64,000 nt of DNA from Paramoeba atlantica (lineage: Eukaryota; Protista; Discosea): NCBI GenBank assembly GCA_977017575.1, contig CDRNVI010000056.1, positions 124,001-188,000 of the forward strand, in the 5' to 3' direction. The position numbers and the translations under genes were made by a program. Of the stretch, positions 1,869-62,560 are shown piece by piece (the stretch's first letter is position 1; every line of letters begins with the position of its first letter). The notes under the pieces are model-generated. The model searched no databases and was not told the origin of the DNA. It saw only the letters and a program-made list of their open reading frames with translations.

Positions 1869-2732
1869 ATGTTCCCCACAGCTGTATCCCGCGTTGATTT
1901 GGCTGACGCACCGCAACCCTCCCCGAAGCGCCGAAAACGAAATGATCAGGACTCTCGTCAGAGCGCTGAAATACATGCCGTGGATGGTCCAGTCGCTCGC
2001 ACCGGTAAAGTGCGAGGTGCAAATTTACCGCAGGAATATGAACTTATGCGACTGATCGCCGGACTTCAGCATCCGCATGCAGCGTGGAACACATCCACTC
2101 CCGCCTGTGAGTGGCCTGGCGTGATGTGCAAAGAGCAAACCATCATCCAGATTGACTGGGGTCATCGCAGCCTTTTTGGAACAATGCAGTGGGAATGCCT
2201 GCCAAAGAGTTTAGAGAAAATGAAAGCCAACAGTGCTCGTCTGAATGGAACCCTCCCGCTGGATATGATGGCTCCGAATCTCGTCCTTCTTTACTTGTTC
2301 ACAAACGAGCTCAGCGGGGAGCTTGATCTGCGACACCTCCCCACCAGTATGCGAAAACTGTGCGTAGGGGACAATAAATTGGAAAGGGAGGTAGATTTGA
2401 CACAACTTCCGCCCAACTTCGCGGTGCTGACGATCCAAATGAACGAACTGTCCGGGGAGATATGTCTCAGTGAGCTTCCCCAAACCCTTCGTATTTTGTA
2501 TATAGGAAACAATGAATTTACGGGGGCGCTGGATCTTTCTCACCTCCCTCCGTTATTGGAAGAGCTTGATGCACAGTACACGGAGTTTGAGGGAACAGTC
2601 TTACTGGACTCTCTTCCCAAAAGCTTAGATACACTTAATCTTGAGGGGTGTGCAGTCTGTGGTGAAATCAAAGAGGAGAATGCGCCCTCTAATTTGAGCA
2701 TAGACGGTACTGATATCACTGTTTTGGAATAG
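1869..2732 (+). CDS. LRR-only protein (array paralog 1) with KRRKR basic motif
   Basis: 287 aa; GKVRGANLPQEYEL leader, CEWPGVMC cap, repeated LxxLxLxxNxLxGxxDLxxLP units. Confidence 0.92.
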   Translation: MFPTAVSRVDLADAPQPSPKRRKRNDQDSRQSAEIHAVDGPVARTGKVRGANLPQEYELMRLIAGLQHPHAAWNTSTPACEWPGVMCKEQTIIQIDWGHRSLFGTMQWECLPKSLEKMKANSARLNGTLPLDMMAPNLVLLYLFTNELSGELDLRHLPTSMRKLCVGDNKLEREVDLTQLPPNFAVLTIQMNELSGEICLSELPQTLRILYIGNNEFTGALDLSHLPPLLEELDAQYTEFEGTVLLDSLPKSLDTLNLEGCAVCGEIKEENAPSNLSIDGTDITVLE

Positions 2733-3219
2733 TCCTATTTGGGGATCAGGAAGTTCAAAAGTCCCTCAAAAACCCGCACAGCCACATTATAATCTTCTCG
2801 GATCCAATTTTGAAAATTCTGATTATAAAAAAATTTACGTCAGCCCTCTTTTCCTTCCTCAGCGCGGAATATACGTGCTTGCATCTGTCCCGACAAGAGC
2901 ACCGAGTTCCGTTAGGTCCTACATAGATAGTATAGCTTCTTTCCGTATTTCCAAGCTCCTGGTATTTTTTTTACGAAATTCTGTTTCGTCGAGAAAATGC
3001 GTTTGCATGACGTGTCGTGTGATTCCAGACCAGAATTATGTATCCTCAGAAATTGAAATTGAACATTCGGGAAATTGCTTTACAGATTTCTTATCGTTTG
3101 TATAAATGATTAGACTGCATAAATTGTCACTGTATCTAATAATGACAGTGGAAAATACGCATATCCAGTAGATTTCAGTAGTGTAGATTTCACCTTCATT
3201 TACGAGCGCGTATTCTTAA

Positions 3220-4053
3220 ATGCTTATGCTAATCGCCATCATATCGGCTTCGGTTTGTCGTGCAGCTGATGACGACGCCAACGCGGCAGTGCAACATATC
3301 CGTCCGGGTAAAATACGAGGAGCCAATTTACCGCAGGAATACGAACTGACACGATTAACTTGCGAGATTGCCAACCCCCCTTCCTCCTGGAACACATCCA
3401 CAAAGGCGTCTGATTGGATGGGCGTGAGTTGTGATGAGAATTCGCGTGTGACAAGGATAAACTGGAGCTATATGGATCTCATCGGCACGCTGCAATGGGA
3501 TTACCTGTGCAGTACGCTACAAGAATTTCAGGTATGGCAGAACGGTTTCTCTGGAAATGTACCGCTTAATAAATTGCCCGCAGAAATGACCAAACTAGAG
3601 ATATTATGCAATGCCTTTTCTGGAGAGTTGGATTTTTCGCATCTTCCCGAAAAAATGGATACAATTATATTAACCCAAAACAACTTTGAGGGTTGCGTGG
3701 ACCTGACCCGTTTGCCTGAAGCTTTGACGTTTTTTAATATCAATGAAAACAACTTTTCCGGGTCTGTGTGCTTGAGTAACTTGCCTAGCAACCTGAGACT
3801 CCTGGGACTTGCAAGGAACCATTTTACGGGACCCCTTGACCTCCAACATTTGCCTCTCTCTCTCCAAGTGTTTGAGGGCCATGGAAATCTATTCAGTGGT
3901 ATTGTGCTCCTCGACTGTCTTCCGGAAGGACTGCGTAAGCTTACTTTGGAAGAAAATACGAAACTGGTCGGCGAAATTGACAAAGCCGTTATTCCCACGT
4001 CTTTGCGACATATTCGTGTGGACGGTACACAAATATCTACCAACATTGAATAA
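3220..4053 (+). CDS. LRR-only protein (paralog 2) with hydrophobic N-terminus
   Basis: 277 aa; MLMLIAIISASVC, RPGKIRGANLPQEYEL, cap SDWMGVSC, about 7 LRRs. Confidence 0.93.
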   Translation: MLMLIAIISASVCRAADDDANAAVQHIRPGKIRGANLPQEYELTRLTCEIANPPSSWNTSTKASDWMGVSCDENSRVTRINWSYMDLIGTLQWDYLCSTLQEFQVWQNGFSGNVPLNKLPAEMTKLEILCNAFSGELDFSHLPEKMDTIILTQNNFEGCVDLTRLPEALTFFNINENNFSGSVCLSNLPSNLRLLGLARNHFTGPLDLQHLPLSLQVFEGHGNLFSGIVLLDCLPEGLRKLTLEENTKLVGEIDKAVIPTSLRHIRVDGTQISTNIE

Positions 4054-4753
4054 ATAGATTTCCTTCTACACGTATGTGTACAAAATGTCGCAACATTCAA
4101 AGTCGACCGTCTTTAGACTACCTGTTTCGCATCGTGGCGTTCGACAGTCGGCTTTTTTTGATCAGCTTTTTTCGCCTAGGTACTTGTACCTTATTTTCAG
4201 TTGATAAAATTTATCCATGATTTATTAAATCATTCTATCGTCCTTAGTTTTGCTTTTCTTTGAGTAAAGAGTATTGGGCTTTGCGCTATATTATGTATAC
4301 CGCTATGTTATGGCATAGAAGGCCCTCCCGTAGGCCCTCCGTACGTAGCCCCCCCCCCTATAAGGGAGTGGTTTTAGGTCAAATCTCTCTTACTTATGCT
4401 TTTCTCCCCAACTTGTTTGACAACTTTTTCTTATTCTTTTCTCTGAAAACGTGTTAAAAAGCTTATTTCGGTACCCCCGAGGCCCCATAAAACTTCATTC
4501 CTGCTTCCCGATGAGATTCCGTTTCTCCTCGAAAATGAATTTTATCTTTTCGCATACGGTTGGCGGCTTCCACTGTACTTCCTCAGGCGCGGGGACCTAC
4601 TCCTTGCTATGACTGATCGAGGGCTCACCAAAGGCATCAGACCCGGCCGCCCTTCTATACGCTGAAGAACATGCATTCGCAACGGCCGGAGAGCTCTCAT
4701 GCTGATGCACGACCAAGTGTAACACCGACAGCAACAAATGTCATTCTAATAGA

Positions 4754-5653
4754 ATGACAATAATAGAATCTATTCTTTCTTTCGACAGAGAGGTGACTTT
4801 CGGTTACATTCAAGAATATTTAGCCTTTTCACCTTTTCCGCAATTTTACATTTCTCACGCTATGGATCTTCCGGACCGCAGAATCACAGAGAAACGTCCC
4901 AGTAAAGTACGAGGAGCCCAATTACCTCAAGAATACGAACTCTCACAATTTATTCAACACATACACAAGACGAAGCCCACATGGAATACATCCAATCCCG
5001 CATGTGAGTGGGAAGGCGTTACGTGTGATGAAGAGTTAAATGTCATGGAGGTGAATTGGGGCTTTATGTTTCTTTCCGGATCCCCTTCTTGGGGGGATCT
5101 GTGCCGCACAGTACGTAATTTTTCTGTGTGGGAAAACGGACTTACTGGAGGGGTATCATTTAGTGAGCTGCCTCCAGGACTGAGCTATCTGCAGCTCTCG
5201 ACCAATGCTTTTTCGGGAGAATTGGATCTGACTCATTTGCCGGCCCGCCTGGAGTCACTTTTGCTGAAAGATAATAAGTTTGAAGGAAATGTTGATCTAA
5301 CCCATTTGCCCTCCACCTTGAGAAAGCTCTGTATGAGCGAGAACCAAATTTCCGGGAAAGTAAATCTTACCGGGCTGCCGAGAAAATTGAGCGATTTATC
5401 TTTTCCGGATAACAAACTAACGGGACCTCTGGACTTAGAGCATTTGCCTCCCTCGCTCGTACATCTGGATTGTGAAAATAATAACTTTACTGGCGTTGCC
5501 AAGTTTGATCGTCTTCCTCGAAATTTCGAAATACTTCGGGTTACGAACAACCCTATGCTGTCCGGATATATTGAAACGTCAAAGTTGCCAAAGACGTTGA
5601 AATGTATTTGGGTTGGAAATACTCGCATAACTTCAAACATAAAACGTGCGTAA
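4754..5653 (+). CDS. LRR-only protein (paralog 3); true start may be Met at 4862
   Basis: RPSKVRGAQLPQEYEL, CEWEGVTC cap, about 7 LRRs. The first 36 codons are pyrimidine-rich and look like UTR. Confidence 0.92.
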   Translation: MTIIESILSFDREVTFGYIQEYLAFSPFPQFYISHAMDLPDRRITEKRPSKVRGAQLPQEYELSQFIQHIHKTKPTWNTSNPACEWEGVTCDEELNVMEVNWGFMFLSGSPSWGDLCRTVRNFSVWENGLTGGVSFSELPPGLSYLQLSTNAFSGELDLTHLPARLESLLLKDNKFEGNVDLTHLPSTLRKLCMSENQISGKVNLTGLPRKLSDLSFPDNKLTGPLDLEHLPPSLVHLDCENNNFTGVAKFDRLPRNFEILRVTNNPMLSGYIETSKLPKTLKCIWVGNTRITSNIKRA

Positions 5654-5945
5654 GTTTGTACAATCTACATCGCTACTTTTATTTCATCTTAATTACAAAA
5701 TGTTTTCTTGTCCAGAAAGGGGTCCGTGTTATCATATCCAGTACACCAATATTCTTGCATATCCAGTGCACCAAAAAAATTGGAAAAAGAAGCCCGTTCA
5801 CAGGTGTCAAACATTTTTTCATATTCAGTGCACCAAGATTATTTATAAAAAAGAACTTTATTGAGCAGTAAAATGATGGGTATAAATTCATACATGGAAC
5901 TGGCATCAGACATCAGAAAAGATGACTTGGAAACTTAAACAAGTA

Positions 5946-6556: not shown

Positions 6557-6649
6557 TATATTGATGAGAAACGAAACATTAGTCTCGACCTTCCAGAAAT
6601 ACGACTTTCTTCTTTTATGCTTTCGACTTACCTACATAACGTCACTCTT

Positions 6650-7581: not shown

Positions 7582-7605
7582 GAGGAATAAAGAAAAAAAC
7601 AATTA

Positions 7606-9452: not shown

Positions 9453-10388
9453 TTGCACTTGTTAGCATATTTGTTGAAGCACATTTATTTTGCAGTTGCA
9501 ACGGAGATACGACTTAGAGATATATCAGTTTTACCCATGCGTGTGGCGCTTTTTGCAGATTTTTTTTCTCGGAAACCACAAAAAGCAACGCGTGCGCTTT
9601 TACCTCAAGAAGTTCAGCTCTCTGCGTTTGTGTCGAACTTTTCCAAAACACATAAGACGTGGAACGCTCACGTACAAGCATGTGAGTGGAGTGGGGTAAC
9701 GTGCGATACGCATAAAAGGGTCGTTACTGTGTCCTGGTGCGGGCGTGCCCTCCGTGGCGACCCTTCCTGGTGCCATTTACCCGACAGCATTCATACGTTA
9801 GAGCTGGGGAGACTTAATTATGGTTGCGGAAATCAACTCTCGGGACCGATTCCCACCGCCTTGTTTCCCCATCCCTCTGTACGGATTGCTCTGGACTATA
9901 ATGTGCTATGCGGGAAAGTTGAGCTTCACGACCTTCCCGTGAATCTGCAAAGTTTTGACATAAGTGGGAATGCTTTGGAAGGAGAGCTTGCGTTAGAGCA
10001 GCTGCCAACGTTCATTAGTATGTTTAACGCCGCAAACGCGGGATTCAGTGGCGGGATCTCATTATCATTGATGCCGGCAAATATTAAAAAGTTGGTTATT
10101 TCTCTCAACCGATTAAGTGGTGAAGTGGATCTTCGCGATCTCCCCACGAGCTTAGCTGAGCTCTACCTGCATAAAAATAATTTCTCGGGGGCGGTCGATC
10201 TTAGCCGCCTTCCCTCTAATTTGGAGCGGTTGACACTTGACACGAATCATTTTTCTGGAGTCCTTGATCTGTCTAGCCTCCCAAAGAATCTAAAGTACTT
10301 GAATTACGCCGAAAACAAGTTCGATCATGTAATTGTAAACGATGATAAGGAACACCATTTTAAAACGGGTTCGGTAACGACAAAGTGA
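9453..10388 (+). CDS. LRR-only protein (paralog 4); likely start Met at 9537
   Basis: MRVALFAD..KPQKATRALLPQEVQL, CEWSGVTC cap, about 8 LRRs. Confidence 0.9.
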   Translation: MHLLAYLLKHIYFAVATEIRLRDISVLPMRVALFADFFSRKPQKATRALLPQEVQLSAFVSNFSKTHKTWNAHVQACEWSGVTCDTHKRVVTVSWCGRALRGDPSWCHLPDSIHTLELGRLNYGCGNQLSGPIPTALFPHPSVRIALDYNVLCGKVELHDLPVNLQSFDISGNALEGELALEQLPTFISMFNAANAGFSGGISLSLMPANIKKLVISLNRLSGEVDLRDLPTSLAELYLHKNNFSGAVDLSRLPSNLERLTLDTNHFSGVLDLSSLPKNLKYLNYAENKFDHVIVNDDKEHHFKTGSVTTK

Positions 10389-14227: not shown

Positions 14228-14905
14228 ATGGTTCATCCTTTCAATACGGTGCGTGCAATTTTACTTACGAATGCAGATATTTTATCTCGACCAAGTAAAG
14301 TGCGAGGCGCTGTCTTACCACAGGAATACACATTGTCTCGCTTTGTGAGTAATCTTGCGTCCCTAGAGGAATCGTGGACAGAGGCTACTCCCGCATATGT
14401 GTTGTGTAATGCGGAAAAGCAAGTAACTTCACTGGGCTGGGATAGTAAACTGTTTGAAGATGAGACAGATGAAGGTGGTTCGGAATTTCCTATTTTGGTT
14501 GGTCCACTACTGTGGGAGTACATCCCGCATACGCTAATTCTCTTTACAGCATACATGCAGGACTTATCAGGCCCTGTGCCGCTTTCCGTACTACCCAACT
14601 GTTTAACAAAGTTTAACATTCGTACCAATGAATGCAGTGGGCAATTAGATCTGATACATCTACCCTCTGCATTGGAAATCTTGGATTTACGTAACAATCA
14701 ATTTGAAGGGACAATTGATCTCACGCGTCTTCCTGCGCATCTAAAATGTCTCTATCTGGGAGGCAACAATCTGTCTGGTAGCTTGGACTTGACACACATC
14801 TCCGAAAATGTGCAGAATATAAATCTGGAACATAACTTCTTTAACGTTCAGCGGACTGTGCCCAACAATGTAGAATTTGGAACTCAAGCTCTCCCTGGAT
14901 GTTGA
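14228..14905 (+). CDS. Short LRR-only protein (paralog 5); cap degenerate
   Basis: 225 aa; RPSKVRGAVLPQEYTL. The cap lacks CxWxG (ATPAYVLC). Acidic insert FEDETDEGGSE; about 4 LRRs. Confidence 0.85.
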   Translation: MVHPFNTVRAILLTNADILSRPSKVRGAVLPQEYTLSRFVSNLASLEESWTEATPAYVLCNAEKQVTSLGWDSKLFEDETDEGGSEFPILVGPLLWEYIPHTLILFTAYMQDLSGPVPLSVLPNCLTKFNIRTNECSGQLDLIHLPSALEILDLRNNQFEGTIDLTRLPAHLKCLYLGGNNLSGSLDLTHISENVQNINLEHNFFNVQRTVPNNVEFGTQALPGC

Positions 14906-15168: not shown

Positions 15169-15792
15169 ATGTGTATGTATATTCCCTCACATCTATCCCC
15201 CCAGGTTCATATCAAGACCTGTGACACTCCAACCGCTACAAAGGAAGCGCGCCCGAAGAAGGTACGGGGTACTTCTCTTCCGGTGGAATATGACTTTGAA
15301 AAATTCATACAGAACGTCGAGCGTCCAGATGCTTCGTGGCACACGCACACGCCTGCGGCTGAGTGGGCAGGTATATTCTTTGCGCAAGGAACGTATGATA
15401 TCGATTGGGCAGACTATGGCTTGCGCGGCTCATTGTGCTGGGAATATTTGGCTACACTTCCCATAAACAGTGTTGTCGTCCCGGAGAACGAGCTCACTGG
15501 TCATCTTCCTTTGGAGAATTTACCATCCAAACTCACACGGTTTCATGTTCATTGCAACGCGCTTAGTGGTCCAGTGGAGCTCCGCTTCTTGCCTTGTGGG
15601 CTACGGGTTCTGCGACTCGATTACAATCAGTTTAGTGGAGAGGTACACTTTGACGCTCTCCCCGCAAGCCTTCAAGAGTTAGGCTTACAGTGGAATACGG
15701 CACTCGTTGGAGAGTTAGATCACAATATGTTGAGTGAAAGGCATCACGTGTTGTCTCTACGTCTCAACCAGACAGGAATTAAAGAGAATTAA
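15169..15792 (+). CDS. Short LRR-only protein (paralog 6)
   Basis: 207 aa; RPKKVRGTSLPVEYDF; Cys-less cap AEWAGIFF; about 4 LRRs. Confidence 0.85.
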   Translation: MCMYIPSHLSPQVHIKTCDTPTATKEARPKKVRGTSLPVEYDFEKFIQNVERPDASWHTHTPAAEWAGIFFAQGTYDIDWADYGLRGSLCWEYLATLPINSVVVPENELTGHLPLENLPSKLTRFHVHCNALSGPVELRFLPCGLRVLRLDYNQFSGEVHFDALPASLQELGLQWNTALVGELDHNMLSERHHVLSLRLNQTGIKEN

Positions 15793-17228: not shown

Positions 17229-18035
17229 ATGCGTCCACTGCCAGCTGCCACGGCAGATCCTGACACAAAGTCAGCACGACTGGGCAAGGCTAGGGCCCCA
17301 CTCCCGCAGGAGTACATACTTGCTGAATTGGTGAAGGACGTGGAGAATCCGCACCCATCGTGGAACACTACAGTACACGCGTGCAAATGGAAAGGGGTCA
17401 CATGTACGGAGGGTGGAGATGTCAGCCAAATAGGCTTTCAGTATGTAGCATTGGATTTCACCTTCTTGCGTGGAAAAATTTGCTGGAAGTTGCCAAGTAC
17501 GTTGCTTTATTTCAGGTCACTTACGCTGGAATTGTGGGGCGAATCTCCTACGGAACATTTGCCTCAGGGATTTCTTTCTATGAGTCTTTACCAAAACAAA
17601 TTTACGGGAGCCATAAATCTATGTGATCTGCCTACCACGTTAGAAAATTTGTCGTTGCATCAGAATAAATTTGAAGGGCCGATTGATCTCAGCCACTTGC
17701 CAGCGACGCTAAAGACCTTGTCCGTCGGAGTGAATAGCTTAACGGGTGAGTTGAATTTCACTCAACTCCCAAGCTCATTGAAGGACATGGACTTCATGAT
17801 GAATCAATTTCATGGCGTAGTGGACTTAGATCACCTGCCGCGCAATCTGTTTTCACTGGAGCTTTCGCGCAATCCAAATTTGCGTGGTTTTTATCGAGCT
17901 TCACGCATGCCGGAGAAAATGCGTACCGAAGAAAAGTCCTTCTTCTTCAGTACGGTATACAAGATACAGTTTCGTAGCGCACGTACCGGAGCCCGGTTCA
18001 ACATCGAAGGGACAGGGATTGTCGAATATAAATAG
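17229..18035 (+). CDS. LRR-only protein (paralog 7)
   Basis: 268 aa; RLGKARAPLPQEYIL, CKWKGVTC cap. A pyrimidine tract plus TAG lies 5 nt before the ATG. Confidence 0.92.
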   Translation: MRPLPAATADPDTKSARLGKARAPLPQEYILAELVKDVENPHPSWNTTVHACKWKGVTCTEGGDVSQIGFQYVALDFTFLRGKICWKLPSTLLYFRSLTLELWGESPTEHLPQGFLSMSLYQNKFTGAINLCDLPTTLENLSLHQNKFEGPIDLSHLPATLKTLSVGVNSLTGELNFTQLPSSLKDMDFMMNQFHGVVDLDHLPRNLFSLELSRNPNLRGFYRASRMPEKMRTEEKSFFFSTVYKIQFRSARTGARFNIEGTGIVEYK

Positions 18036-18361: not shown

Positions 18362-19186
18362 ATGTATAAAATGTATCGCAATGACTGCATCGATGACGGG
18401 TCTGATGTACGTCGGGGTAAGGTTACCTCAATGTTACTACCCCAAGAAGATAGGCTTGAACGTTTTATTTCGAATCTAACAATACGCGATAAGTCTTGGC
18501 GTACGACGAAGAAGAACGCATTCGGACGTGTCAAACGCCTATCCGTGTGTAAGTGGCGAGGCGTGACATGTGATGCATCCCAACAAGCAACGAAAATTAT
18601 ATGGACCTGGATGAAACTTCAAGGTACATTGCAGTGGGATTATTTGCCCGAGTCGGTCTTTCGTTTTGACTCTTCTTTTTGCAGGCTTACCGGACCCGTT
18701 CTGCTTGATGCGCTGCCACCGCGACTCACATACTTCAACTTAGAACGCAACATATTTATCGGTGAGTTAAACTTAAGCGATCTACCCAGAATACTATGTA
18801 CTCTTTGGTTGAATGACAATAAATTCGACGGAAGTGTAGATCTGACGCTTCTGCCTTGTGGGTTAGAATATTTATATTTGCGAAACAACCAACTTTCCGG
18901 TGCCGTCGATCTTTCTCATTTGCCGACGAACTTACGAAATCTCGATCTATCCAGCAACAGATTCACGGGACCGCTTTCGTTGCAACATTTGCCTGCATTA
19001 CTGACTTCTTTGGAGTGTCAACAAAATTCATTATCTGGTTTAGTTCTTTTTGACTGTCTTTCTGAAAACTTGCGAAAACTGTCCTTATATAATAACAAAG
19101 ATCTTTATGGAGAGATAAAGACTTCTCCAAATATTCGAGCCTTCATCGATATACGAAACACGGGCATTCGCTTCCAAGATCCCTGA
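18362..19186 (+). CDS. LRR-only protein (paralog 8), DDGSD/basic-insert subfamily
   Basis: 274 aa; DDGSDVRRGKVTSMLLPQEDRL, WRTTKKNAFGRVKRLSVCKWRGVTC. Confidence 0.92.
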   Translation: MYKMYRNDCIDDGSDVRRGKVTSMLLPQEDRLERFISNLTIRDKSWRTTKKNAFGRVKRLSVCKWRGVTCDASQQATKIIWTWMKLQGTLQWDYLPESVFRFDSSFCRLTGPVLLDALPPRLTYFNLERNIFIGELNLSDLPRILCTLWLNDNKFDGSVDLTLLPCGLEYLYLRNNQLSGAVDLSHLPTNLRNLDLSSNRFTGPLSLQHLPALLTSLECQQNSLSGLVLFDCLSENLRKLSLYNNKDLYGEIKTSPNIRAFIDIRNTGIRFQDP

Positions 19187-19989: not shown

Positions 19990-20820
19990 ATGACTTTCAT
20001 GTTGCTTTGCTTTTTCGAAACAGTGGATCCTTCGAATGCGAACACACAGGAAATGCGACCAGGTAAGGTACGAGGAGCGAACTTACCGCAAGAATATGAA
20101 CTCACACGCTTCGTACAAAACATTGAGAATCCGGATCCATCATGGAATGCTTCCACGCCCGCGTGTGAATGGGAACATGTAACTTGTGATGAAGAGTTAC
20201 ACGTAATATGGATAAATTGGAACGGTATGAATATGAAAGGGTCGCTTCAATGGAACTATCTGTGCCACACAGTACTCGAATTTCGTGCGTGGTTGAACCA
20301 ATTCAGAGGAAATGTCTTACTCGGTGCTCTGCCATCTCAAATCGTAAGATTTGATCTCTCTACTAATGGTTTCTCAGGAGAATTGGATTGGTCACATTTG
20401 CCCGGTGAAATGATAGACCTCTTCTTCAGCGACAACAAGTTTAAGGGATGTGTAGATTTTAAGCACTTGCCTTTGAGTTTGAAAGTTCTGCAGGTACAGT
20501 ACAATCAGTTTTCTGGGGATCTTGATCTTACTCGCTTACCACGCCTAATGACGCATGTAAATCTATCGCAAAACTGTTTTACAGGGCCTCTCAACTTACA
20601 GCACTTGCCTTCATCACTCCAAATTTTGAACTGTCACAGAAATCAGTTCAGTGGCCTTGTGATGTTCAACCGCCTTCCTATCAGCTTAAGTACCCTTAAT
20701 TTAGAAGCCAACGCTGAATTATGCGGTACAGCAGAAAAGTTGACTCTCCCAATCGCGCTGAAGAACTTGGGTGTGGGTGGTACTAAAATTTCATCAAATT
20801 TTACTCCAAAAATCGATTAA
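19990..20820 (+). CDS. LRR-only protein (paralog 9)
   Basis: 276 aa; RPGKVRGANLPQEYEL, CEWEHVTC cap, about 7 LRRs. AG immediately precedes the ATG. Confidence 0.93.
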   Translation: MTFMLLCFFETVDPSNANTQEMRPGKVRGANLPQEYELTRFVQNIENPDPSWNASTPACEWEHVTCDEELHVIWINWNGMNMKGSLQWNYLCHTVLEFRAWLNQFRGNVLLGALPSQIVRFDLSTNGFSGELDWSHLPGEMIDLFFSDNKFKGCVDFKHLPLSLKVLQVQYNQFSGDLDLTRLPRLMTHVNLSQNCFTGPLNLQHLPSSLQILNCHRNQFSGLVMFNRLPISLSTLNLEANAELCGTAEKLTLPIALKNLGVGGTKISSNFTPKID

Positions 20821-21764: not shown

Positions 21765-21858
21765 GTATGCGTACTACACTATGTATATCTGTCGGTAACA
21801 ACGTGTCCGTCTCTATCTTTATAACATAACGCACGTCAACATCAGTATTCTTTATTAA

Positions 21859-22689
21859 ATGTCGACGTCTTCTCTAGTGCAATTTGCAGATTCACCCCAC
21901 ACTCGAGCACGTCTGGGTAAAGTGCGAGGAGCCATCCTCTCGCAGGACATGCTAATGGCACAATTTATTGAGAACCTGGAGAAGAGGTTTGTCATTACCA
22001 AGAATAAAACACAGGTATGTTTATGGGATGGTGTCATTTGTAATTTCGACGACGAAGTCATAAACATCGACTTTTTGTCCAAGGGACTCAAGGGTAATCT
22101 AACCTGGGGTAGCCTACCCCACACGGTGTGTAGTGTTCGTATCGGAGGTAATAAACTTGACGGATATTTTCGGGTTTGTGAACTTCCCCCCACGCTCATT
22201 AATTTAAACATCTCATACAACTCCTTTCATGGACCGTTTGATACTGGATCCCTACCCCAAGCGTTTGAAGAATTTTGGTCAGCATCTACAAAGTTTTCCG
22301 GTGAGCTTGACCTGACGGGACTTCCTCCTTCTTTGAAAGTGTTTCTTTTGTCTTGTAACTATTTTTCGGGAAAATTGGATTTGACTTTGTTGCCCGGAGC
22401 GCTACTCAAGCTCTATCTTCAAGGAAACCAATTCGTAGGGAGCGTGGATTTAACAAATCTTCCAAACCAACTTGAAGAGTTATACCTGTCACAGAATAGG
22501 CTTGATGGTAAGTTGGTGCTTCGAAATCTTCCGCACGCATTACATACGCTCTCTCTTGCGGACAACGCATTTACGGGGAAAGTGCGGTTTGATGCATTGC
22601 CTTCAGGTATGTATCATTTAGGTCTGAGTGGAAATAAAGGTACTTTGGATGTGAAATCCTCGTCAATTCCAAAATGTGTCCAAATATAA
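21859..22689 (+). CDS. LRR-only protein (paralog 10)
   Basis: 276 aa; FAD..RARLGKVRGAILSQDML, CLWDGVIC cap, about 8 LRRs. Confidence 0.92.
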   Translation: MSTSSLVQFADSPHTRARLGKVRGAILSQDMLMAQFIENLEKRFVITKNKTQVCLWDGVICNFDDEVINIDFLSKGLKGNLTWGSLPHTVCSVRIGGNKLDGYFRVCELPPTLINLNISYNSFHGPFDTGSLPQAFEEFWSASTKFSGELDLTGLPPSLKVFLLSCNYFSGKLDLTLLPGALLKLYLQGNQFVGSVDLTNLPNQLEELYLSQNRLDGKLVLRNLPHALHTLSLADNAFTGKVRFDALPSGMYHLGLSGNKGTLDVKSSSIPKCVQI

Positions 22690-23199: not shown

Positions 23200-23847
23200 A
23201 TGTTTCCCATCGGTGTCTTCACTGGTGTGTTACGTGCCTCGGATGTGCCAGCTACGCGTCCATCTCGTCCATCAAAAGTGACTTCCGTTGCGCTACCCGA
23301 GGAATACGATTTAGCAAGACTTGTTGAAAAAATCGAAAAAATCCACTCAAGCTGGAACATCGACACCCCTGCGTGTGAGTGGGACGGCATTGAGTGTTAC
23401 CCCTTCGAAAAATACGTGGAACAAATTCGTTGGGGTGCCCGTTGCTTAAAAGGGGAATTGATTTGGAGATATCTCCCATCGCGTGTAGCCACGGTACATG
23501 CATGGCGTACCAGGCTCCATGGTGAGGTTCCCTTCGAAGCGTTGCCCTCCACCACTACACACTTTTGGGTTTCGGATAACGAGTTAAGTGGTCATCTAAA
23601 TCTTGCGCGTCTTCCGTGCTCGATGGAATATTTGAACATGGAAGAGAACAGTTTTTCGGGAACTGTTGACCTGTCGAGACTTCCATCCACTCTGAACGAG
23701 TTGCTGTTATCGAGAAACGGTGATCTCAACGGTGTGTTGAATGCGAGATTATACTCCGATCTCTACTATGATGTTCGACGCACACAGATTACGGTGTTGA
23801 ACGGGGAGCCTTGGGGATATACCAACCTCTGCCTGGACGAGGAGTGA
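23200..23847 (+). CDS. Short LRR-only protein (paralog 11)
   Basis: 215 aa; RPSKVTSVALPEEYDL, CEWDGIEC cap, about 4 LRRs. Confidence 0.9.
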   Translation: MFPIGVFTGVLRASDVPATRPSRPSKVTSVALPEEYDLARLVEKIEKIHSSWNIDTPACEWDGIECYPFEKYVEQIRWGARCLKGELIWRYLPSRVATVHAWRTRLHGEVPFEALPSTTTHFWVSDNELSGHLNLARLPCSMEYLNMEENSFSGTVDLSRLPSTLNELLLSRNGDLNGVLNARLYSDLYYDVRRTQITVLNGEPWGYTNLCLDEE

Positions 23848-35984: not shown

Positions 35985-37967
35985 ACGTCATTGGTTTAAA
36001 AAGCCAAAAGGTGGACAAAGAATATTTCGTACTCTCTGTAAATTGCGTAAGTGGCTAACTTACACTCTCATTGTGTAAGTGACTAACTTAGCCCGGAAGA
36101 TATTCGCATAATGCGAATAATACTCGCAAATTTCGTCAAATAAAACGGGGCGAATTCGCTCGTTCTCCAAAACGTTCAGCAAATTCTTCATCTTTGCCTC
36201 CTGCGTGGCGATGCAGGAACTGCAACTCCCTTGAAGGAAGTATAGTATGCTACCCTATATTATTTAGGGCCCGAAGTTATTATTGTCAATTTGGGACCCT
36301 ACATTGAATATGACTCATATGTGCACTGCCAGATGGAGCAAAGGTCGGATCAACCGCTTTATACCCAGATTGGGTAGCCGGGTGTTCGAGGGTAATTCCT
36401 CTTGAAGTTTTTACGTAGTGCACCGCATCTGGGCGGGCGCCTACCGCCTCCCGCACAGTGGGCTTGACGTGTTGCTTTAACCAGGTTCAACGCTGAAACC
36501 GCTCTGTGCTAGACACTGGTGAAGAAGAGGAGCACATCGCGGATTTTCGCGAGTCCCGCTGGTGCCACGAAAAGCCCCTGTCATCTCTTTTGGGGCTCGG
36601 TCACTCTTTTGTTCTTCTGCTCCCGGGTTCGTGGACACCAGGACTTCTGGATTCGCGATTAATGTCGTTTCCTGGGTGCACAGTTTCCTGGATGCACAGA
36701 GAACCGGCTGGGAAACGATGTGGCTCGATGGTTCACCGCTTTTAGCTCCGCGCATTAACTCCGCGAGCTGTGTCTCAATTTCTGGCTGTCGGGGCATTGG
36801 CTGTCGGGGCCAATGGGCATCCCTGCCTTGTAAAAGAGAATGGCACCAGTGAGGACTTGAACGAGCTCACTACGGATGGTAAGCCCCATTCGCTTCATGG
36901 AGTATGGCTGAAGAAAATTTGAACGAGCGTCAGCATCTGCGTTGTTCCCAGGGACAAGCTCGGGAGTCATGACGAGTGATACACACCCCCTGTATGGAGA
37001 TCTACAAAGTGTAGTATCAACGTCCCCTGTCTCCTCATACGTCGCTTCATCCAACGCTTTGTAGTGTCCTTATGACAACCCGCATCGCCCATCCTGATGG
37101 TCGGACTTTATGGTGACTGTTTCACCATTACGAACTCCATAATCCCTAAATTTTAAATGCAAACCTTTACAACCCCCACAGGCAAGCTTTATGCAGCTTG
37201 CATCATGCCTAAAAAGGATAGAAAGCACTAGATCGTTGTGCTTTCATCTCAGCTGGCCGATTTGCTTGTAACGATTCGGCCTCTTCCACAAGCTACGCAT
37301 CAAAGCACTTTTGCAGTTCAGGAAAGGATAAAGAAGAAGCAATGCCTTGATTTGGATATCATAGGAGAGTATGCAGTAGGTCTGTGTAAGTTCGTGTTGA
37401 TCCGTCACGAGCTGTGTAGGTTCGTGGTAATCCGTGTAGATTTGCATAGGTTCGCGTAGTTTTTTTTTGACATTTTTTTAGAAGGTTCAATGACTCGGCC
37501 TCTAGGATGATTGCATGTAGGCAAAGTTGACCGAATTAGTTAAATCACGTCACTTAAATGAAAAGTTGAATAACAGTTGAAAGAATAACAACTGAAGGAA
37601 TAAACCCGCTTCGGCACATGGTTTTACAATGGAGTTGAAAGGCTTTTTTCTGGTCTTTCCAACTTTCTTAACTTATTCAAAATAAATTGACGTAGTTCTC
37701 TAGGGAATCGTTTCATTATTTTAGAACGGGGTGCATGTCTTCTTTTTCATGTCTTGTACATTGAATACTGTTGTATACATTCTTTGTTTCCAAAAACTCC
37801 TTTTTGGGAATCGTAAACAAACGACTAAAATTTATATCCTTGTAAACACTGAACTAACAACTTTTTTCCCTATTTTTTTAAACAGCTCATGTTTTCAGCT
37901 CATGTTTAACGACTCGTTGAATCTTTCACAGCACAACCTTTGTACAATAGATTAAGCGACACGAAAG

Positions 37968-38780
37968 ATGGATGACGGCTCCGATATAAGTCTCGATCGG
38001 GTGAAATCAACGACTCGGGTTGCGTTACCTCAAGTTAATATGCTCGAAAAGCTAGTTTCCAACATTACTCAAAAGCATAAATCATGGCGTGCAACAAAAA
38101 AGAATATGTTTGGACAACTCAAACGAGCATCTGCGTGTAAATGGAAAGGAGTGAGTTGTGATGCGGATCAGCACGTGACCCGAATCGAATGGAATTCCAT
38201 GAAACTGGGGGGCACACTCCCGTTGGAGAACCTACCGTTTAAGATACAATATTGTGACGTTCATGGCAACACACTCACGGGGTCGGTTGCGCTGGAGGCG
38301 CTGCCCGCCCAGCTTGTCGATTTGAATTTAGCCTACAACGCTTTCTTTGGTGAGTTAAACTTTACCCAGTTGCCTCGTACACTGCGGGTACTGGAGTTGA
38401 ATAACAACCAATTCGAGGGAAGCGTAGATCTTACAAAGTTCCCTCGAGTATTCAGATCTTTGCATCTTAACCATAATAGGCTTTCAGGGGCAGTTGATCT
38501 TTCTCATTTCCCCGATAAAATGCAAGAAATTTATTTGAGTCACAATTGTTTCACGGGACCTCTTCTGCTTCAACATTTGCCTCCGTCACTTTCCTATTTT
38601 TGTTGCCAATTTAATGCTTTCTCTGGTTTGGTTTCGTTCGACTGTCTGCCGAAAAAATTACTATTTATTTCTGTACATAACAACAACGCTCTCTCTGGTG
38701 AGGTTGACAAATCAGCGCTTCCTCAGAATTTACGGTCTGTAGATTTTAGGAACACAGAAATTCGTTTTAAAAATGTTTAG
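37968..38780 (+). CDS. Full-length LRR-only protein (parent of the triplicated gene), DDGSD subfamily
   Basis: 270 aa with the normal C-terminal LRR cap (..VDFRNTEIRF); NHNR where the truncated copies have NHNG. Confidence 0.92.
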   Translation: MDDGSDISLDRVKSTTRVALPQVNMLEKLVSNITQKHKSWRATKKNMFGQLKRASACKWKGVSCDADQHVTRIEWNSMKLGGTLPLENLPFKIQYCDVHGNTLTGSVALEALPAQLVDLNLAYNAFFGELNFTQLPRTLRVLELNNNQFEGSVDLTKFPRVFRSLHLNHNRLSGAVDLSHFPDKMQEIYLSHNCFTGPLLLQHLPPSLSYFCCQFNAFSGLVSFDCLPKKLLFISVHNNNALSGEVDKSALPQNLRSVDFRNTEIRFKNV

Positions 38781-47289: not shown

Positions 47290-48150
47290 TTGATGCTCAC
47301 CTCTCTTGTGATAATCTCTTCTTGGACACAGGACGATGGACGCTCTACGAAACGTAGAAAGCGAAATGAGGACACATATATCCCTCCTCCGGGTGGGACA
47401 ACAAAGGCGCATAGAGTACGGGGAGCAAATTTACCACAAGAATATGAACTTGCACGATTCGTCCAAAATATTTCGAATTTGGATCCTTCATGGAATACGT
47501 CCACCCATGCATGTGATTGGAAGGGTGTGAATTGTGATGCTGAATTACACGTGTCAAAAATAATGTGGATGTTTATGGGTCTCTCGGGGTCATTGGAATG
47601 GAATTATCTATGCCGTACACTACGTGAGTTTGCTGGATGGGATAACAAATTTACCGGAAGCATGCCACTTGATGTTTTGCCTTTACAAATGACAATGTTG
47701 AACGTATGCGTCAACTCGTTTTCGGGCTCATTAGATCTGCCCCATTCGCATGGCGCAATGGATATGCTTATTTTGCACGAAAACAACTTTGAAGGGGATC
47801 TGGACCTCATCCACCTGCCTTTGAATTTGAAGTGGCTTCAAGTTAATTCGAATCAACTTTCTGGTGAAGTCGATCTTACTGGCTTACCCTCCAACATGGA
47901 ACACTTGAATATTTCGCACAATCGTTTTACAGGACCGTTGAATTTAGAACACTTGCCTTCATCACTTCAGTATTTCGAATGTCAGGGAAATCAATTCAGT
48001 GGTGCTGTGACGTTTGACCATCTTCCTGAATTCTTACTTTCATTTAGTTTGGCGGACAACACGGATCTTTACGGGGAAGTCGACAAAGCCATTGTCAACA
48101 TCCCCTCGCTGTGCGTGAGCGGTACTCAGATAACTTTACATGATCGTTAG
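47290..48150 (+). CDS. LRR-only protein (paralog 18) with KRRKR motif
   Basis: 286 aa; GRSTKRRKRNE, HRVRGANLPQEYEL, CDWKGVNC cap. Confidence 0.93.
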   Translation: MMLTSLVIISSWTQDDGRSTKRRKRNEDTYIPPPGGTTKAHRVRGANLPQEYELARFVQNISNLDPSWNTSTHACDWKGVNCDAELHVSKIMWMFMGLSGSLEWNYLCRTLREFAGWDNKFTGSMPLDVLPLQMTMLNVCVNSFSGSLDLPHSHGAMDMLILHENNFEGDLDLIHLPLNLKWLQVNSNQLSGEVDLTGLPSNMEHLNISHNRFTGPLNLEHLPSSLQYFECQGNQFSGAVTFDHLPEFLLSFSLADNTDLYGEVDKAIVNIPSLCVSGTQITLHDR

Positions 48151-48375
48151 CTCGGTTCCTTAACGCGTGCTACATGCGCATGTATGTGAATTTACAAACA
48201 GCTATGAAACAACGTTTATGGATCGGCATCTACAGAAGGGAAACCATCATTTGTTTAAAATGTCCATTGTGCATGAAAACGAATGTTAAACTCTTCATTC
48301 GTTTGCGGGTCGTACTACAGTATTATTAAAATGTCAATCAATCTCTCAGTAGTTTGTTTGCGCTGCGCAGCTCAA

Positions 48376-48465
48376 ATGATGACGTGCAAGCGTCCACGCA
48401 AAATACGAGGCGCTACCTTACCTCTGGAATACGAAGTCACGCGACTTAAAATTATTTTAGGATAA
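48376..48465 (+). pseudogene. 5' relic of an LRR paralog (leader motif only)
   Basis: MMTCKRPRKIRGATLPLEYEVTRL then stop. Confidence 0.7.
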
Positions 48466-60732: not shown

Positions 60733-60733
60733 A

Positions 60734-60823: not shown

Positions 60824-60942
60824 TAATATTAGTAGTTGATACTGAAAGTAATGCTAATTTCGTATGATTCGAACATTTCTTTAAGCGTACATGTAGAACA
60901 CTATTACCCTATTGTCGAACCCCCTACATGGACCCCGAACTA

Positions 60943-61240
60943 CCGTAGACCCCCCCCAGTAATAGAATCGATTTTGGGCCAAAATGGCCGAATCCTTGTT
61001 ACTGGGGGGGTATGCTTTTTGGGTGAGAAAGGACCTTTTTTATTCATGAGTTCGTTGACTTTCAGCACATCCAACCCCGCAACCACGCCATTCGCTCCCT
61101 CGCAACCGCCCTCACCCCGCCCAAACACCCCCTCCCTCCTGCAACGACCCTCCCGAGCCAAATCTTTGTTACTGGGGGTCAGCCGAAAAAGGGTCGAATC
61201 CCTTTTACTGGGGGGGGTCTATTACTAGGGGGCTCTACGG
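60943..61240. mobile_element. MITE family C, 298 bp, TA TSD, inverted relative to the 57035 copy
   Basis: TA|CCGTAGACCCCCCCCAGTAA ... TTACTAGGGGGCTCTACGG|TA. Confidence 0.85.
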
Positions 61241-61858
61241 TAGTCTCCGTACTCGCTCCCTACACACTTCCTGCACCCCCTGTACCCGACTGCACCCCCT
61301 AGACCCGACTTCCACCCCCTGGAACCCCCACCCGGATCCTCCAGCGAACTCCATAGCCGAAAAAACTCCAAGTACCATTGCCATTGGTCTCTCTTGGGAC
61401 CTGACTGGGTTTGCATTTTACTGGTTTCAGCCCTCTTACTTCACCACCCCCCTTACTTCACCAAAAAGTACGGGTTTTGGACCAAAAATTGGGGGCTAAG
61501 TAGGGGGGATAACGGTAACTCACGTAGAATTACGAAATTTGTTGAATTTTACTAAGAGAAAACTAAAATTCGGGCCGCTTCGCGGCGCGTGTATTTCAAG
61601 GGAATAAAGATAAAGGGTACCTTGAAGGGGACACTACATATTCCAAGTATAACGTAACATAACCACCACGCGGTGCAGTGTTTTTGAATCCCCCCTGATA
61701 GGCAGAATATGGCAGAATACGGCAGATTGAGCGACCGCCTCCCCTCTTTTTGTAAGTTTTATTCCATTTTTTGGAATCAAAAAGAAAGGAATTGGAATCG
61801 TCCATTTCATTTACATTTAGAGAGTAGTACTTTGAACTAACACTCGTACTTCGACACC

Positions 61859-62560
61859 ATGCAACGTGCCGTACGCGTGGCCGATGTCCCCTCTCGACCC
61901 AGTAAGGTGCGAAACGCGGTCCTCCCACAAGAATACAATATGTTTCGACTACTGAGTAACGCCAGTTTTTCTGAGGAATCATGGAACGAGAAAACGCCTG
62001 CTTGTGTGTGGAAACATGTGGAGTGTAGCGATGAGAGAGAGGTGACAAAGATACAATGGCGCAAATACGAAAGCGCATATGGAGACAAAGAGGAGAGAGT
62101 CTCTCTACAAGGTTCACTGCGATGGAATTTCCTACCCGACACTCTGATCTCCTTCGATGTTTCCTTGCAGGAGGTTTTGGAGGGGCACGTAGACTTGTCG
62201 ATACTACCGGCAAGATTGAAAAAGTTTGACATTGGTAGCAATCAGTTTAGCGGAAGTTTGGATTTAACGCATTTGCCGTCTACTCTGAAAGATTTGCGTT
62301 TGGGATGGAATCGTTTTGAAGGTGAAGTTGATCTTACACGCCTCCCCGATACTTTGAAAAATCTCGACCTGTGTCATAATAGTCTGTGCGGAAAACCTGA
62401 TCTCACAAAGCTTCCGAAGGCGCTAATGTGGGCCAGGCTCCTTGTCAACAATTTCGTCATACCTGACTTTATTCCGGAAGGTGTTCACATCAAGCCGTAT
62501 GTGAGTAGAAGACGACCCTGTGGATTCAATCCGTACAAAGTACGATATAACCATAAATGA
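61859..62560 (+). CDS. LRR-only protein (paralog 20)
   Basis: 233 aa; ADVPSRPSKVRNAVLPQEYNM, CVWKHVEC cap, charged insert, about 5 LRRs. Confidence 0.9.
   Translation: MQRAVRVADVPSRPSKVRNAVLPQEYNMFRLLSNASFSEESWNEKTPACVWKHVECSDEREVTKIQWRKYESAYGDKEERVSLQGSLRWNFLPDTLISFDVSLQEVLEGHVDLSILPARLKKFDIGSNQFSGSLDLTHLPSTLKDLRLGWNRFEGEVDLTRLPDTLKNLDLCHNSLCGKPDLTKLPKALMWARLLVNNFVIPDFIPEGVHIKPYVSRRRPCGFNPYKVRYNHK

Follow-up and report, generated by a model that had tools for sequence, protein, structure and literature searches.

What does a short N-terminal leader do when it is shared by a whole array of small leucine-rich repeat (LRR) proteins that carry a plant-type cap and no anchor? The question is raised by a 64,000-nt stretch of DNA, hereafter the window, which an earlier note had read as a one-strand array of about 20 LRR genes whose basic leader motif, found in place of a signal peptide, might act in sorting, export or processing, or else form a structural extension of the N-cap. 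The array itself stands: a family HMM run against the six-frame translation recovers 20 loci of one LRR family, all on the + strand, made up of 16 intact genes, two truncated by tandem duplication, one frameshifted and one relic. This one-strand stretch is presumably polycistronic. In each of its proteins the leader is followed by a plant-type LRRNT cap and then by 23-residue LRRs in series, and a C-terminal cap closes the chain.

1869..2732, + strand: LRR gene, 287 aa, LRRNT_2 E=2.4e-4; weak apolar head MFPTAVSRVDLA-D13, NLS-like KRRKR (nt 1926-1940), then TGKVRGANLPQEYEL
3220..4053, + strand: LRR gene, 277 aa; signal-peptide-like head MLMLIAIISASVCRAA-D17 (12-residue hydropathy 2.64), then RPGKIRGANLPQEYEL
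4754..5653, + strand: LRR gene, 299 aa counted from the first ATG, motif RPSKVRGAQLPQEYEL; the true start could be the internal Met37-Asp38
9537..10388, + strand: LRR gene, MRVALFA-D8 from the first ATG, motif degenerate (KPQKATRALLPQEV)
14228..14905, + strand: LRR gene, 225 aa; MVHPFNTVRAILLTNA-D17, then RPSKVRGAVLPQEYTL; partial deletion in the cap cysteine region
15169..15792, + strand: LRR gene, 207 aa; RPKKVRGTSLPVEY; lacks both cap cysteines
17229..18035, + strand: LRR gene, 268 aa; minimal head MRPLPAATA-D10
18362..19186, + strand: LRR gene of the 'DDGSD' subtype, 274 aa; head without hydrophobic core, basic insert in the cap
19990..20820, + strand: LRR gene, the modelled one, 276 aa; MTFMLLCFFETV-D13 ... 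RPGKVRGANLPQEYEL
21845..21858, + strand: 5' UTR; the spliced-leader tail GTTTCTGTACCTTGTT joins a transcript contig exactly at 21845
21859..22689, + strand: LRR gene, 276 aa; N-terminus MSTSSLVQFA-D11 verified by the spliced-leader junction
23200..23847, + strand: LRR gene, 215 aa; MFPIGVFTGVLRAS-D15, then RPSKVTSVALPEEYDL
27243..28163, + strand: LRR gene, 306 aa, LRRNT_2 E=3.7e-5; long signal-peptide-like head of 27 residues before D28, NLS-like KRRKR (nt 27342-27356), motif AHKVRGAQLPQEYEL
28535..29359, + strand: LRR gene of the 'DDGSD' subtype, 274 aa; MLTVYNI-D8, then RRGKVASLLLPQED
30518..38780, + strand: tandem repeat with a 2,709-nt unit, compared segments 100% identical, holding three copies of one 'MDDGSD' LRR gene
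32550-33275 and 35259-35984, + strand: 'MDDGSD' copies truncated at the repeat junction, 241 aa each
37968-38780, + strand: complete 'MDDGSD' copy, 270 aa
40961..41777, + strand: frameshifted LRR gene, broken directly after ...RPGKVRGAKLPQEYELAQF; an intact version, P0015, is present in ENA data
47293..48150, + strand: LRR gene; MLTSLVIISSWTQ-D14, NLS-like KRRKR (nt 47350-47364), then AHRVRGANLPQEYEL
48331..48465, + strand: relic ORF, leader and start of the cap helix, then a stop, MSINLSVVCLRCAAQMMTCKRPRKIRGATLPLEYEVTRLKIILG; the motif-only relic noticed earlier near 48376 is thus real
61859..62560, + strand: LRR gene, 233 aa; minimal head MQRAVRVA-D9, then RPSKVRNAVLPQEYNM

With high confidence, the DNA is a stretch of the nuclear genome of a Perkinsela-like kinetoplastid living inside the marine amoeba Paramoeba atlantica. 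Two transcripts begin with the leader tail ...GTTTCTGTACCTTGTT(G), which we take to be a kinetoplastid-type spliced leader; the junction is an AG acceptor that lies 31 nt upstream of the first ATG in one transcript and 14 nt upstream in the other. Protein P0040 is identical between the ENA assembly and EukProt Paramoeba atlantica, homologues of the LRR family occur in Perkinsela sp. CCAP 1560/4 (P0037, E=2.5e-59 against the profile of the window family) and among Paramoeba aestuarina transcripts, and the nearest Atlas clusters belong to Euglenozoa and Discosea. The genes are live, as judged from a pN/pS of 0.35 over six LRR genes, measured against a near-identical second contig, and from transcripts: contigs span 17238-17759 of gene 17229, and one contig covers 21845-23070, giving gene 21859 a 5' UTR of 14 nt. 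Four spliced-leader junctions confirm that the short N-termini of family members are real. The motif is carried by spliced-leader-capped transcripts, and the possibility that it is missing from mature mRNAs, which would have told against the earlier note's idea, is thereby set aside.

These small LRR proteins are the endosymbiont's largest gene family, and an N-terminal profile matches 2,087 clusters (50% identity), 884 of them at E<=1e-10. The Perkinsela genome of Tanifuji et al. reportedly holds 5,252 genes. The family as such is already known, since the 'leucine-rich proteins' of Perkinsela sp. belong to it and are likewise highly multi-copy, expressed and found almost only in these endosymbionts; Supplementary Note 1.4 of Tanifuji et al. 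(2017, Sci Rep 7:11688) counts 462 or more genes, speaks of 'hundreds of leucine-rich proteins, significance unclear' and deals with gene number and divergence only. The leader is absent from that note, which describes neither cap type nor N-terminal verification, and the window differs further in its host species and in its tandem arrays mixed with transposons.

The assignment of the cap to the plant type is borne out by Pfam, where LRRNT_2 is matched just above the cut-off in two of the five LRR genes scanned, and by Foldseek, whose top matches to the gene 19990 model come from plant LRR ectodomains such as those of PSKR, PGIP and FLS2. The plant LRRNT_2 ectodomains (PGIP, PSKR1, FLS2, SERK, LRX) share the fold at E of about 1e-8, with a query-normalised TM-score of up to 0.77, as well as the cap signature W..CxWxGVxC and a helix that precedes the paired cysteines. 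At the sequence level the family resembles solved plant caps marginally (E of about 0.01), and the match leaves the leader uncovered. The window family differs from them in its 23-residue repeat, in mostly lacking a canonical signal peptide, and in having no transmembrane segment, kinase or GPI anchor. Beyond residue 30 the 19-residue hydropathy never exceeds 1.35, and none of the complete copies ends in a hydrophobic C-terminus, in agreement with the earlier claim that transmembrane and GPI tails are absent. Unlike in the plant proteins, the cap disulphide has been lost in a third of the family; its two cysteines are kept or lost together (both in 41 members, neither in 25, discordant in 5), which hints at folding in the ER. 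Many unpaired cysteines lie within the repeats.

The leader consists of two modules, a head and a junction joined by a variable linker, rather than one motif. The junction (module 2) follows the consensus G-[KR]-[VLI], four residues, L-[PS]-Q-[EQ], and every copy in the window has [RK]xxK[VI]RGxxLPQEY or a recognisable variant before its cap, so that the conserved basic motif first noticed there holds throughout, sometimes as a variant. Conserved positions are written with several codons (four for Arg, four for Val, four for Leu, three to four for Pro; GAT 10 times and GAC 6 times for the conserved Asp), and conservation therefore acts at the protein level, the synonymous changes reported earlier being genuine. 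The motif had been placed directly before the cap; it does adjoin the cap, but LPQEYEL already lies inside it, as Pfam LRRNT_2 starts at about NLPQEY, with profile position 8 aligned to the L of EYEL, and as the AlphaFold model of gene 19990 makes LPQEYEL the first cap helix (Q34-F41) with pLDDT above 90, rising above 94 beyond it. In the same model residues 1-30 score 55-66, and the block holding KVRG averages 55 in the window's subfamily (group A) against 85 for the equivalent stretch LGRLDY in the sister subfamily (group B), although low pLDDT of head or junction is not proof of disorder. Whether the motif is an ordered part of the cap, a point on which the earlier idea was said to turn, is thus answered by halves: LPQEYEL is, whereas the KVRG block is not modelled as such.

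The earlier note's main idea, spelled out in full, would make G-[KR]-[VLI] (KVRG) a PEXEL-, TEXEL- or RXLR-like motif, cut by a protease beside the domain and licensing export to the host. PEXEL (Plasmodium), TEXEL (Toxoplasma) and RXLR-dEER (oomycetes) likewise combine a short conserved basic N-terminal motif with a large diversified family in an intracellular or host-associated eukaryote, and the idea draws on the retention of [KR] in 69 of 71 sequences despite the low-confidence stretch in which it lies in the window's subfamily, on a protease-accessible boundary between flexible leader and fold, and on the dibasic or NLS-like clusters found upstream in some members. Those known motifs, however, come after a canonical signal peptide, are embedded in disordered linkers whose distance to unrelated effector domains varies, and are common to unrelated cargo, whereas the window motif keeps an essentially fixed distance from the cap helix across 71 diverse members, belongs to a single family in the sample (the leader occurs on no non-LRR ORF in the 141 kb of endosymbiont DNA searched) and mostly lacks an upstream canonical signal peptide. 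Its sequence matches neither RxLxE/Q/D nor RxLR, and AlphaFold renders its counterpart in the sister subfamily as ordered. Cap-helix position, fixed spacing, restriction to LRR genes and scarcity of signal peptides make the analogy weak and protease-licensed export unlikely; the basic motif is in itself probably no PEXEL-like signal, a structural reading fits it better, and module 2, comprising junction and first cap helix, would be mainly structural.

Extending that structural reading to the whole leader, head included, as an N-cap extension that covers the first repeat with a strand or serves oligomerisation and has no part in sorting, appears improbable. The leader is confined to the LRR family, and in the sister subfamily head, Asp and LGRLDY run together as a single block some 20 residues long that adjoins the helix, with pLDDT reaching 85 from residue 11; yet residues 1-10 in group B and 1-30 in group A are without secondary structure at pLDDT 55-66, despite alignments of 60-71 sequences behind the models. 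Between Asp and G-[KR] the family accommodates inserts of as many as 36 residues, heads vary from 5 to 27 residues, and headless members exist.

The head (module 1), mentioned only in passing by the earlier note as a short apolar N-terminus ending in (A)D, consists of Met, about nine uncharged apolar residues, small residues and a nearly invariant Asp (67 of 70 sequences), with a modal length of 10 residues. It behaves like a targeting peptide in being strictly N-terminal, depleted of charge (Asp/Glu 0.1-0.2-fold and Lys 0.3-fold, with Ala enriched 3.3-fold), set at a variable distance from the domain (4-36 residues from Asp to G-[KR]) and not modelled as ordered, its pLDDT being low in both AlphaFold models; it may have a role in targeting. 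In a subset of members the linker carries a classical NLS-like cluster, KRRKR or PPxKRRKQ. That the head stands in place of a signal peptide is true of most copies: a 12-residue hydropathy window of at least 2.0 is reached by 4% of members, compared with 63% of the plant LRR controls, the core spans only 5-6 residues in many heads (e.g. MLLILAD, MQRAVRVAD), gene 19990 has a short one of about seven, and genes 17229, 21859, 61859 and 1869 have almost none. It is not true of genes 3220 and 27243, whose full-strength cores, shared by P0013, match those of signal peptides. By eye only, and unscored, the gene 47293 head looks apolar and that of gene 9537 (MRVALFAD) nearly coreless. In about 35% of members the Asp is preceded by V, I, L or M. 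Signal peptidase is not expected to accept these at -1, and an invariant +1 residue is not a signal-peptidase feature.

The best explanation, to which we give a probability of about 0.4, is a two-module leader in which a structural junction is coupled to a head serving as an atypical secretion or targeting signal. We infer, with low to moderate confidence, that the head is a targeting pre-sequence reduced to a minimum at the N-terminus, and most likely an ER/secretion signal, atypical and shortened, that goes back to the signal peptide of an ancestral secreted LRR protein of plant type; the endosymbiont would release members at its surface or into the cytoplasm of the host, those with an NLS might go on to a nucleus, and the repeats would supply a diversified binding surface. 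Consistent with this are the full-strength cores that some members carry on the same LRR scaffold, the atypical nature of kinetoplastid signal peptides, which generic predictors miss (PMC10903960), and an endosymbiont with a single bounding membrane and retained exocytosis genes (PMC5601477).

Secretion is opposed by the scarcity of canonical-strength cores, the misfit at -1 and the losses of the cap disulphide, and the same facts speak for a doubtful but possible alternative, in which the proteins stay in the endosymbiont cytosol, or in the nucleus if they bear an NLS, and the head is a family-specific non-secretory element such as a reused vestigial signal peptide, a weak membrane tether, a degron or a docking peptide. 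For entry through Sec61 most heads lack the necessary length and hydrophobicity, the disulphide is dispensable in part of the family, with unpaired cysteines in the repeats, and predictors had assigned to the 'cytosol' two members listed in a glycosome-candidate table (Tanifuji et al. 2017). Around ten members begin directly with 'MD...' and lack the apolar peptide, one of them (P0232) having an NLS-like cluster, as would suit proteins residing in the cytosol or nucleus of the endosymbiont. Against internal residence, no obvious internal role presents itself for so large a family in a genome described as reduced, signal peptides of canonical strength occur on the same scaffold, gene 27243 even pairing one with an NLS-like cluster, and the family shares its fold and cap with plant LRRs that are extracellular.

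Large, expanded host-exposed families, of LRR and other proteins, also exist in microsporidia and further intracellular eukaryotes; they mostly have recognisable signal peptides, and no sequence relationship to the window family was found for them. The window family resembles such expansions in its lineage-specific small repeat proteins, reduced genome and family-specific N-termini.

Along the entire window, an ORF listing and a motif scan find + strand ORFs of 200-310 aa with a common layout, in which ...[RK]xxK[VI]RGxxLPQEY... is followed by SWNTSTPACEWxGVTC and then by 23-residue repeats of the form LPxxLxxLxLxxNxFSGxLDL. An HMM of this family, built from 17 ORFs and run against the six-frame translation of the window, returns 20 loci, all on the + strand, which bears out the earlier note's description of a one-strand array of about 20 leucine-rich repeat (LRR) genes. 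These comprise 16 distinct intact genes, two truncated extra copies, one frameshifted gene and one relic. The irregular features of the array are the following:

About 41.1 kb, + strand: LRR gene split by a frameshift
48331-48465, + strand: relic ORF reduced to the leader and the first part of the cap helix
30518-38780: tandem repeat with a 2,709-nt unit and its junction inside an LRR gene

The relic is thus the locus in which the motif had been said to survive alone. The tandem repeat, whose units are 100% identical in the 300-nt segments compared, either arose very recently by duplication or is an artefact of the assembly, and because its junction falls inside the LRR gene, two of the three copies of this gene lose the C-terminal cap (241 aa versus 270 aa). 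Past residue 30, no copy in the window shows a 19-residue hydrophobic stretch, and a hydrophobic C-terminus is absent from all complete copies. The LRR genes thus carry neither a transmembrane segment nor a GPI signal, in agreement with the earlier note. Synonymous variation under the motif is equally real: the conserved positions are encoded by several synonymous codons in the window genes, the conserved Asp, for example, by GAT in 10 genes and GAC in six.

The window is nuclear DNA of a Perkinsela-like kinetoplastid endosymbiont of Paramoeba atlantica, as follows from a spliced leader, the identity of one protein across data sets, the relatives of the family in Perkinsela and Paramoeba, and the nearest Atlas clusters. 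A JGI transcript (L002) encodes one family member exactly, and its 5′ GTTTCTGTACCTTGTTG has no counterpart in the genomic copy (L001); transcript and genome meet at an AG acceptor 31 nt upstream of the first ATG, and we take the GTTTCTGTAC core to be the 3′ part of kinetoplastid spliced leaders. When a contig set from 2015, probably a transcriptome (that it is RNA is a guess), was aligned to window positions 17150-23149, genes 17229 and 21859, named by their start positions, were both covered. One of its contigs spans 21845-23070 and has GTTTCTGTACCTTGTT as its 5′ loose end, which places the trans-splice site of gene 21859 14 nt ahead of its ATG. All the read-type evidence consists of contigs, which show presence and junctions, not the level of expression. 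The protein P0040 is identical in an ENA assembly, which also holds near-identical copies of window genes, and in the EukProt set of Paramoeba atlantica MMETSP0151, while the family profile is matched by P0037 from Perkinsela sp. CCAP 1560/4 (NCBI; E=2.5e-59) and P0045 from Paramoeba aestuarina (E=2.8e-55), and the nearest Atlas clusters belong to Euglenozoa and Discosea. The one-strand arrangement of the genes is that expected of kinetoplastid polycistronic units.

The short N-termini of these proteins are real in the four cases with a spliced-leader junction, in all of which the annotated start coincides with the first ATG downstream of the junction:

P0006 (a family member): N-terminus MSTPAAIFIFSCMLYSTAD, spliced-leader junction
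Gene 21859: N-terminus MSTSSLVQFAD, spliced-leader junction
Two transcripts of a second Paramoeba data set: shared 5′ CTTAATTG tail, which we take to be the spliced-leader end of that species, and starts MLLILADD and MSIAVHFFTVD

The junctions exclude a hidden upstream exon with a signal peptide in these four cases. The deposited start of P0037 lies 37 residues upstream of an internal Met with a family-typical head, MFSEVCFACV-D, and its annotated N-terminus is probably too long. The putative spliced-leader 3′ tails also differ by data set, being ...GTACCTTGTTG in P. atlantica (L002 1-17) and ...CTTAATTG in JGI sample 3300017225 (L005 1-9, L006 1-9), a difference that could be used as a species marker to sort endosymbiont transcripts. 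A scan of metagenome contigs with the 17-nt leader tail gave 97 matches, which were chance-like and in unrelated metagenomes.

Alignments of 71 diverse members (A2) and, separately, of 46 N-termini (A4) resolve the leader into two modules. The first, the head, consists of Met, a median of nine residues and an Asp that is present in 67 of 70 sequences and hence conserved like the Trp of the cap (68/70, W61). The segment before the Asp is 3.3-fold enriched in Ala and depleted of Asp and Glu (0.1-0.2-fold) and Lys (0.3-fold), and its length including Met peaks at 8-12 residues among 173 N-termini, plus a separate peak formed by about ten genuine 'MD...' starts. The second module, the junction, reads [LP]-G-[KR]-[VLI]-x4-L-[PS]-Q-[EQ], with [KR] in 69, V/L/I in 61, Leu in 63 and P/S in 69 of 71 sequences, and it is continuous with the cap helix in the alignments, with no indels and with a spacing of four residues from [VLI] to the cap Leu in nearly all 71. 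The form RxGKVRGxxLPQEYEL of the window's subfamily is equivalent to LGRLDYxSLSxQxLMEL in a large sister subfamily. The modules lie 4-7 residues apart, measured from Asp to [KR], in the sister subfamily and 7-36 in that of the window. In a further Perkinsela-like assembly (ENA ERZ25071330, a 1.42-Mb contig), many of the genes called on both strands of a 20.9-kb locus belong to the LRR family. Several of these LRR genes keep the M-apolar-AD head while the G-[KR]-[VLI]/LSxQ block is replaced by unrelated sequence, and the two modules are therefore once more separable. The linker contains KRRKR in window genes 1869, 27243 and 47293 and PPxKRRKQ in the proteins P0213, P0232 and P0239, in a cluster placed 5-9 residues after the Asp that, as a sequence pattern, fits the classical monopartite nuclear localization signal (NLS), K-[KR]-x-[KR].

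The scaffold that follows the leader is of plant type. Foldseek places the fold among the plant LRR ectodomains PSKR1, PGIP, FLS2, LRX and SERK, and the family has the helix and CxWxGVxC of plant LRRNT_2-capped proteins, with Pfam LRRNT_2 bit scores of 21.8 and 24.4 against a cut-off of 20.7; in sequence comparison, solved plant caps show a marginal similarity that starts only downstream of the leader. The cysteine pair of the cap is found in 41 of 71 members and tends to be kept or lost jointly (41 both, 25 neither, five discordant), a count that is confounded by subfamily structure.

In the AlphaFold model of gene 19990, computed from the 71-sequence alignment (mean pLDDT 93.2), residues 1-30, MTFMLLCFFETVDPSNANTQEMRPGKVRGA, have no secondary structure and block pLDDT values of 66, 59 and 55, before confidence reaches 94 for residues 31-40; the first helix spans Q34-F41 (QEYELTRF), and together with this jump it identifies LPQEYEL as cap. 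KVRG is not modelled as ordered in the window's subfamily. In P0071, a protein of the sister subfamily (mean pLDDT 92.1), residues 1-10 (MIQIFLAIDP) have 59, residues 11-20 (SLGRLDYASL) 85 and the rest about 98, which predicts a fairly ordered cap extension for the junction, the head again not being modelled as ordered. The suggestion that the motif is an ordered part of the cap therefore stands for LPQEYEL and for the sister junction, but not for KVRG in the model of gene 19990. A leader that is structural throughout, head included, seems improbable, as the head is not modelled as ordered in either protein.

The alternative offered by the earlier note was a shared sorting, export or processing signal comparable to PEXEL or RXLR, and it was set against the cargo of 162 ORFs of 90 aa or more in 141 kb of endosymbiont DNA (the window, three loci of the same assembly, of which one is a near-identical second contig, and one locus of another assembly). 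In this small sample, 47 ORFs are members of the LRR family, hits of the leader HMM with E<0.5 fall on LRR genes only, and 17 of the 47 LRR ORFs and one of the 115 others match the pattern ^M[uncharged 5-16]D, so that nothing points to unrelated cargo carrying the leader. PEXEL- and RXLR-type motifs, in contrast, are common to unrelated cargo, stand downstream of a canonical ER signal peptide, a feature that a minority of members show here (genes 3220 and 27243 and the proteins P0006 and P0013), and lie within a disordered linker at a variable distance from the effector, whereas here the spacing to the cap Leu is fixed. A PEXEL-like role for KVRG is hardly likely on these three counts, and we infer that the basic motif is chiefly a structural junction of the cap. 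What remains of the proposed sorting signal is the apolar-Asp head, which appears to be a better targeting candidate than the basic motif.

Canonical signal peptides are usual in plant-type LRRNT_2-capped proteins, whereas the heads mostly lack them: a Kyte-Doolittle mean of at least 2.0 over 12 residues within the first 30 is reached by 4% of the family and 63% of the plant LRR proteins from the same search, some of these controls being fragments. The hydrophobic core is of full strength in genes 3220 and 27243, P0013 and P0006. Position -1 before the Asp is A in 40%, S in 8% and V, I, L or M in about 35%, and about 70% have A, T, S or C at position -2; acceptance of V, I, L or M at -1 by signal peptidase is not expected. 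Signal peptides of kinetoplastids are themselves reported to be atypical, Ala- and Val-rich and often missed by generic predictors (PMC10903960), and none of BiP, PDI, calreticulin or Sec61, looked for as typical endosymbiont signal peptides, is listed in the 2017 supplements.

Other targeting signals fit the leader poorly. A PTS2 ([RK][LVI]-x5-[HQ][LA]) is contradicted in the alignments by wrong spacing and a wrong final residue, both in KV-x6-QE of the window's subfamily and in RL-x7-Q[AT] of the sister subfamily; a mitochondrial presequence is ruled out by the scarcity of Arg and Lys in the head and by the invariant acidic residue at its end; and N-terminal palmitoylation is not compelling, head Cys being just 1.75-fold enriched and present in 21 of 68 sequences. 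The 'MD' starts, considered as a sign of cleavage before the Asp, are weakened in this role because Met at -1 is tolerated in full-length heads.

We tentatively favour secretion or targeting by the head, with a probability of roughly 0.4. Most economically, the head would be a secretion pre-sequence, shortened and atypical, that was inherited together with the extracellular scaffold of plant type. An internal, non-secretory role inside the endosymbiont is somewhat unlikely, yet almost as likely as secretion, in view of the great weakness of most heads, the poor fit of position -1 to signal peptidase, the 'MD' starts and a cap disulphide that a third of the family has lost. If the proteins are cytosolic, a plant-type 'extracellular' LRR scaffold would have been re-used intracellularly on a massive scale. 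Were they secreted through the head, the single membrane that bounds the endosymbiont and its retained exocytosis genes (PMC5601477) mean that they would arrive in the host cytoplasm, from which NLS-bearing members could go on to a nucleus. Gene 27243 combines a strong signal-peptide-like head with the NLS-like cluster, a pairing that makes most sense if the nucleus is that of the host. The endosymbiont always sits against the host nucleus. The full proposal, in which the 10-residue apolar head with its invariant Asp would be a lineage-specific export signal that delivers hundreds of diversified LRR proteins to the host cytoplasm and a subset with a KRRKR-type NLS to the host nucleus, is unlikely as a whole; if true, it would amount to an effector system of one eukaryote inside another that uses a targeting code of its own. 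An N-terminal Asp, once exposed, might also act as a conditional N-degron. The permanent residence of Perkinsela, a non-photosynthetic eukaryote, within another eukaryote, Paramoeba, has been described as unique (PMC5601477), and communication between the partners was explicitly left as a hypothesis in the 2017 genome paper. Three results turn a curious feature into a testable one: a verified non-canonical N-terminal module, NLS-like clusters in a subset of members and a basic motif that is mostly cap structure.

In Perkinsela, 462 leucine-rich proteins were found by BlastP, and more by tBLASTn; they are unrelated to bodonins, many are expressed, two family members are labelled 'cytosol' in a table, and their 'significance ... 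unclear' was the verdict (Tanifuji et al. 2017). The leader is mentioned neither there nor in the other literature searched. A profile search of 1.84 billion representatives of public data matched 2,087 clusters at 50% identity, and among the 150 listed, nearly all are 90-430 aa long, with a match that begins within the first 15 residues or so and the same head. The window genes belong to the Perkinsela/PLO leucine-rich protein family, with its hundreds of divergent copies per genome, which by the 2017 count of 462 or more genes may be the largest of the endosymbiont.

Six genes compared with the near-identical contig L003, which is probably the other haplotype or a strain copy, show 61 differences in 60 codons, 28 synonymous and 33 non-synonymous (pN/pS 0.35). 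This is purifying selection, but relaxed, which fits the expectation for a fast-evolving family, and together with the transcripts it rules out an array of pseudogenes. Apparent deletions of 96 nt and 39 nt on L003, in the genes matching 21859 and 27243, are merely different start-codon calls.

The ORFs at 6165-6416, 7270-7578 and 7580-7903, within 5709-8074, have no Pfam match at E<=0.01. On the - strand, two overlapping ORFs at 43230-44086, one with a weak match to DDE_Tnp_4 (PIF/Harbinger-type transposase; E=1e-4, below the Pfam cut-off), are probably a decayed DNA transposon inside the array, and an ORF at 63247-63966 has a weak match to RVT_3 (RNase H-like; E=0.008). A 403-aa ORF with no Pfam match lies on the - strand inside the one-strand array at 25348-26559, and a gene of similar size (386 aa) occupies the corresponding place on L003 (8172-9332, - strand). 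A gene on the opposite strand is unexpected inside a kinetoplastid polycistronic unit, and this one may be carried by a mobile element.
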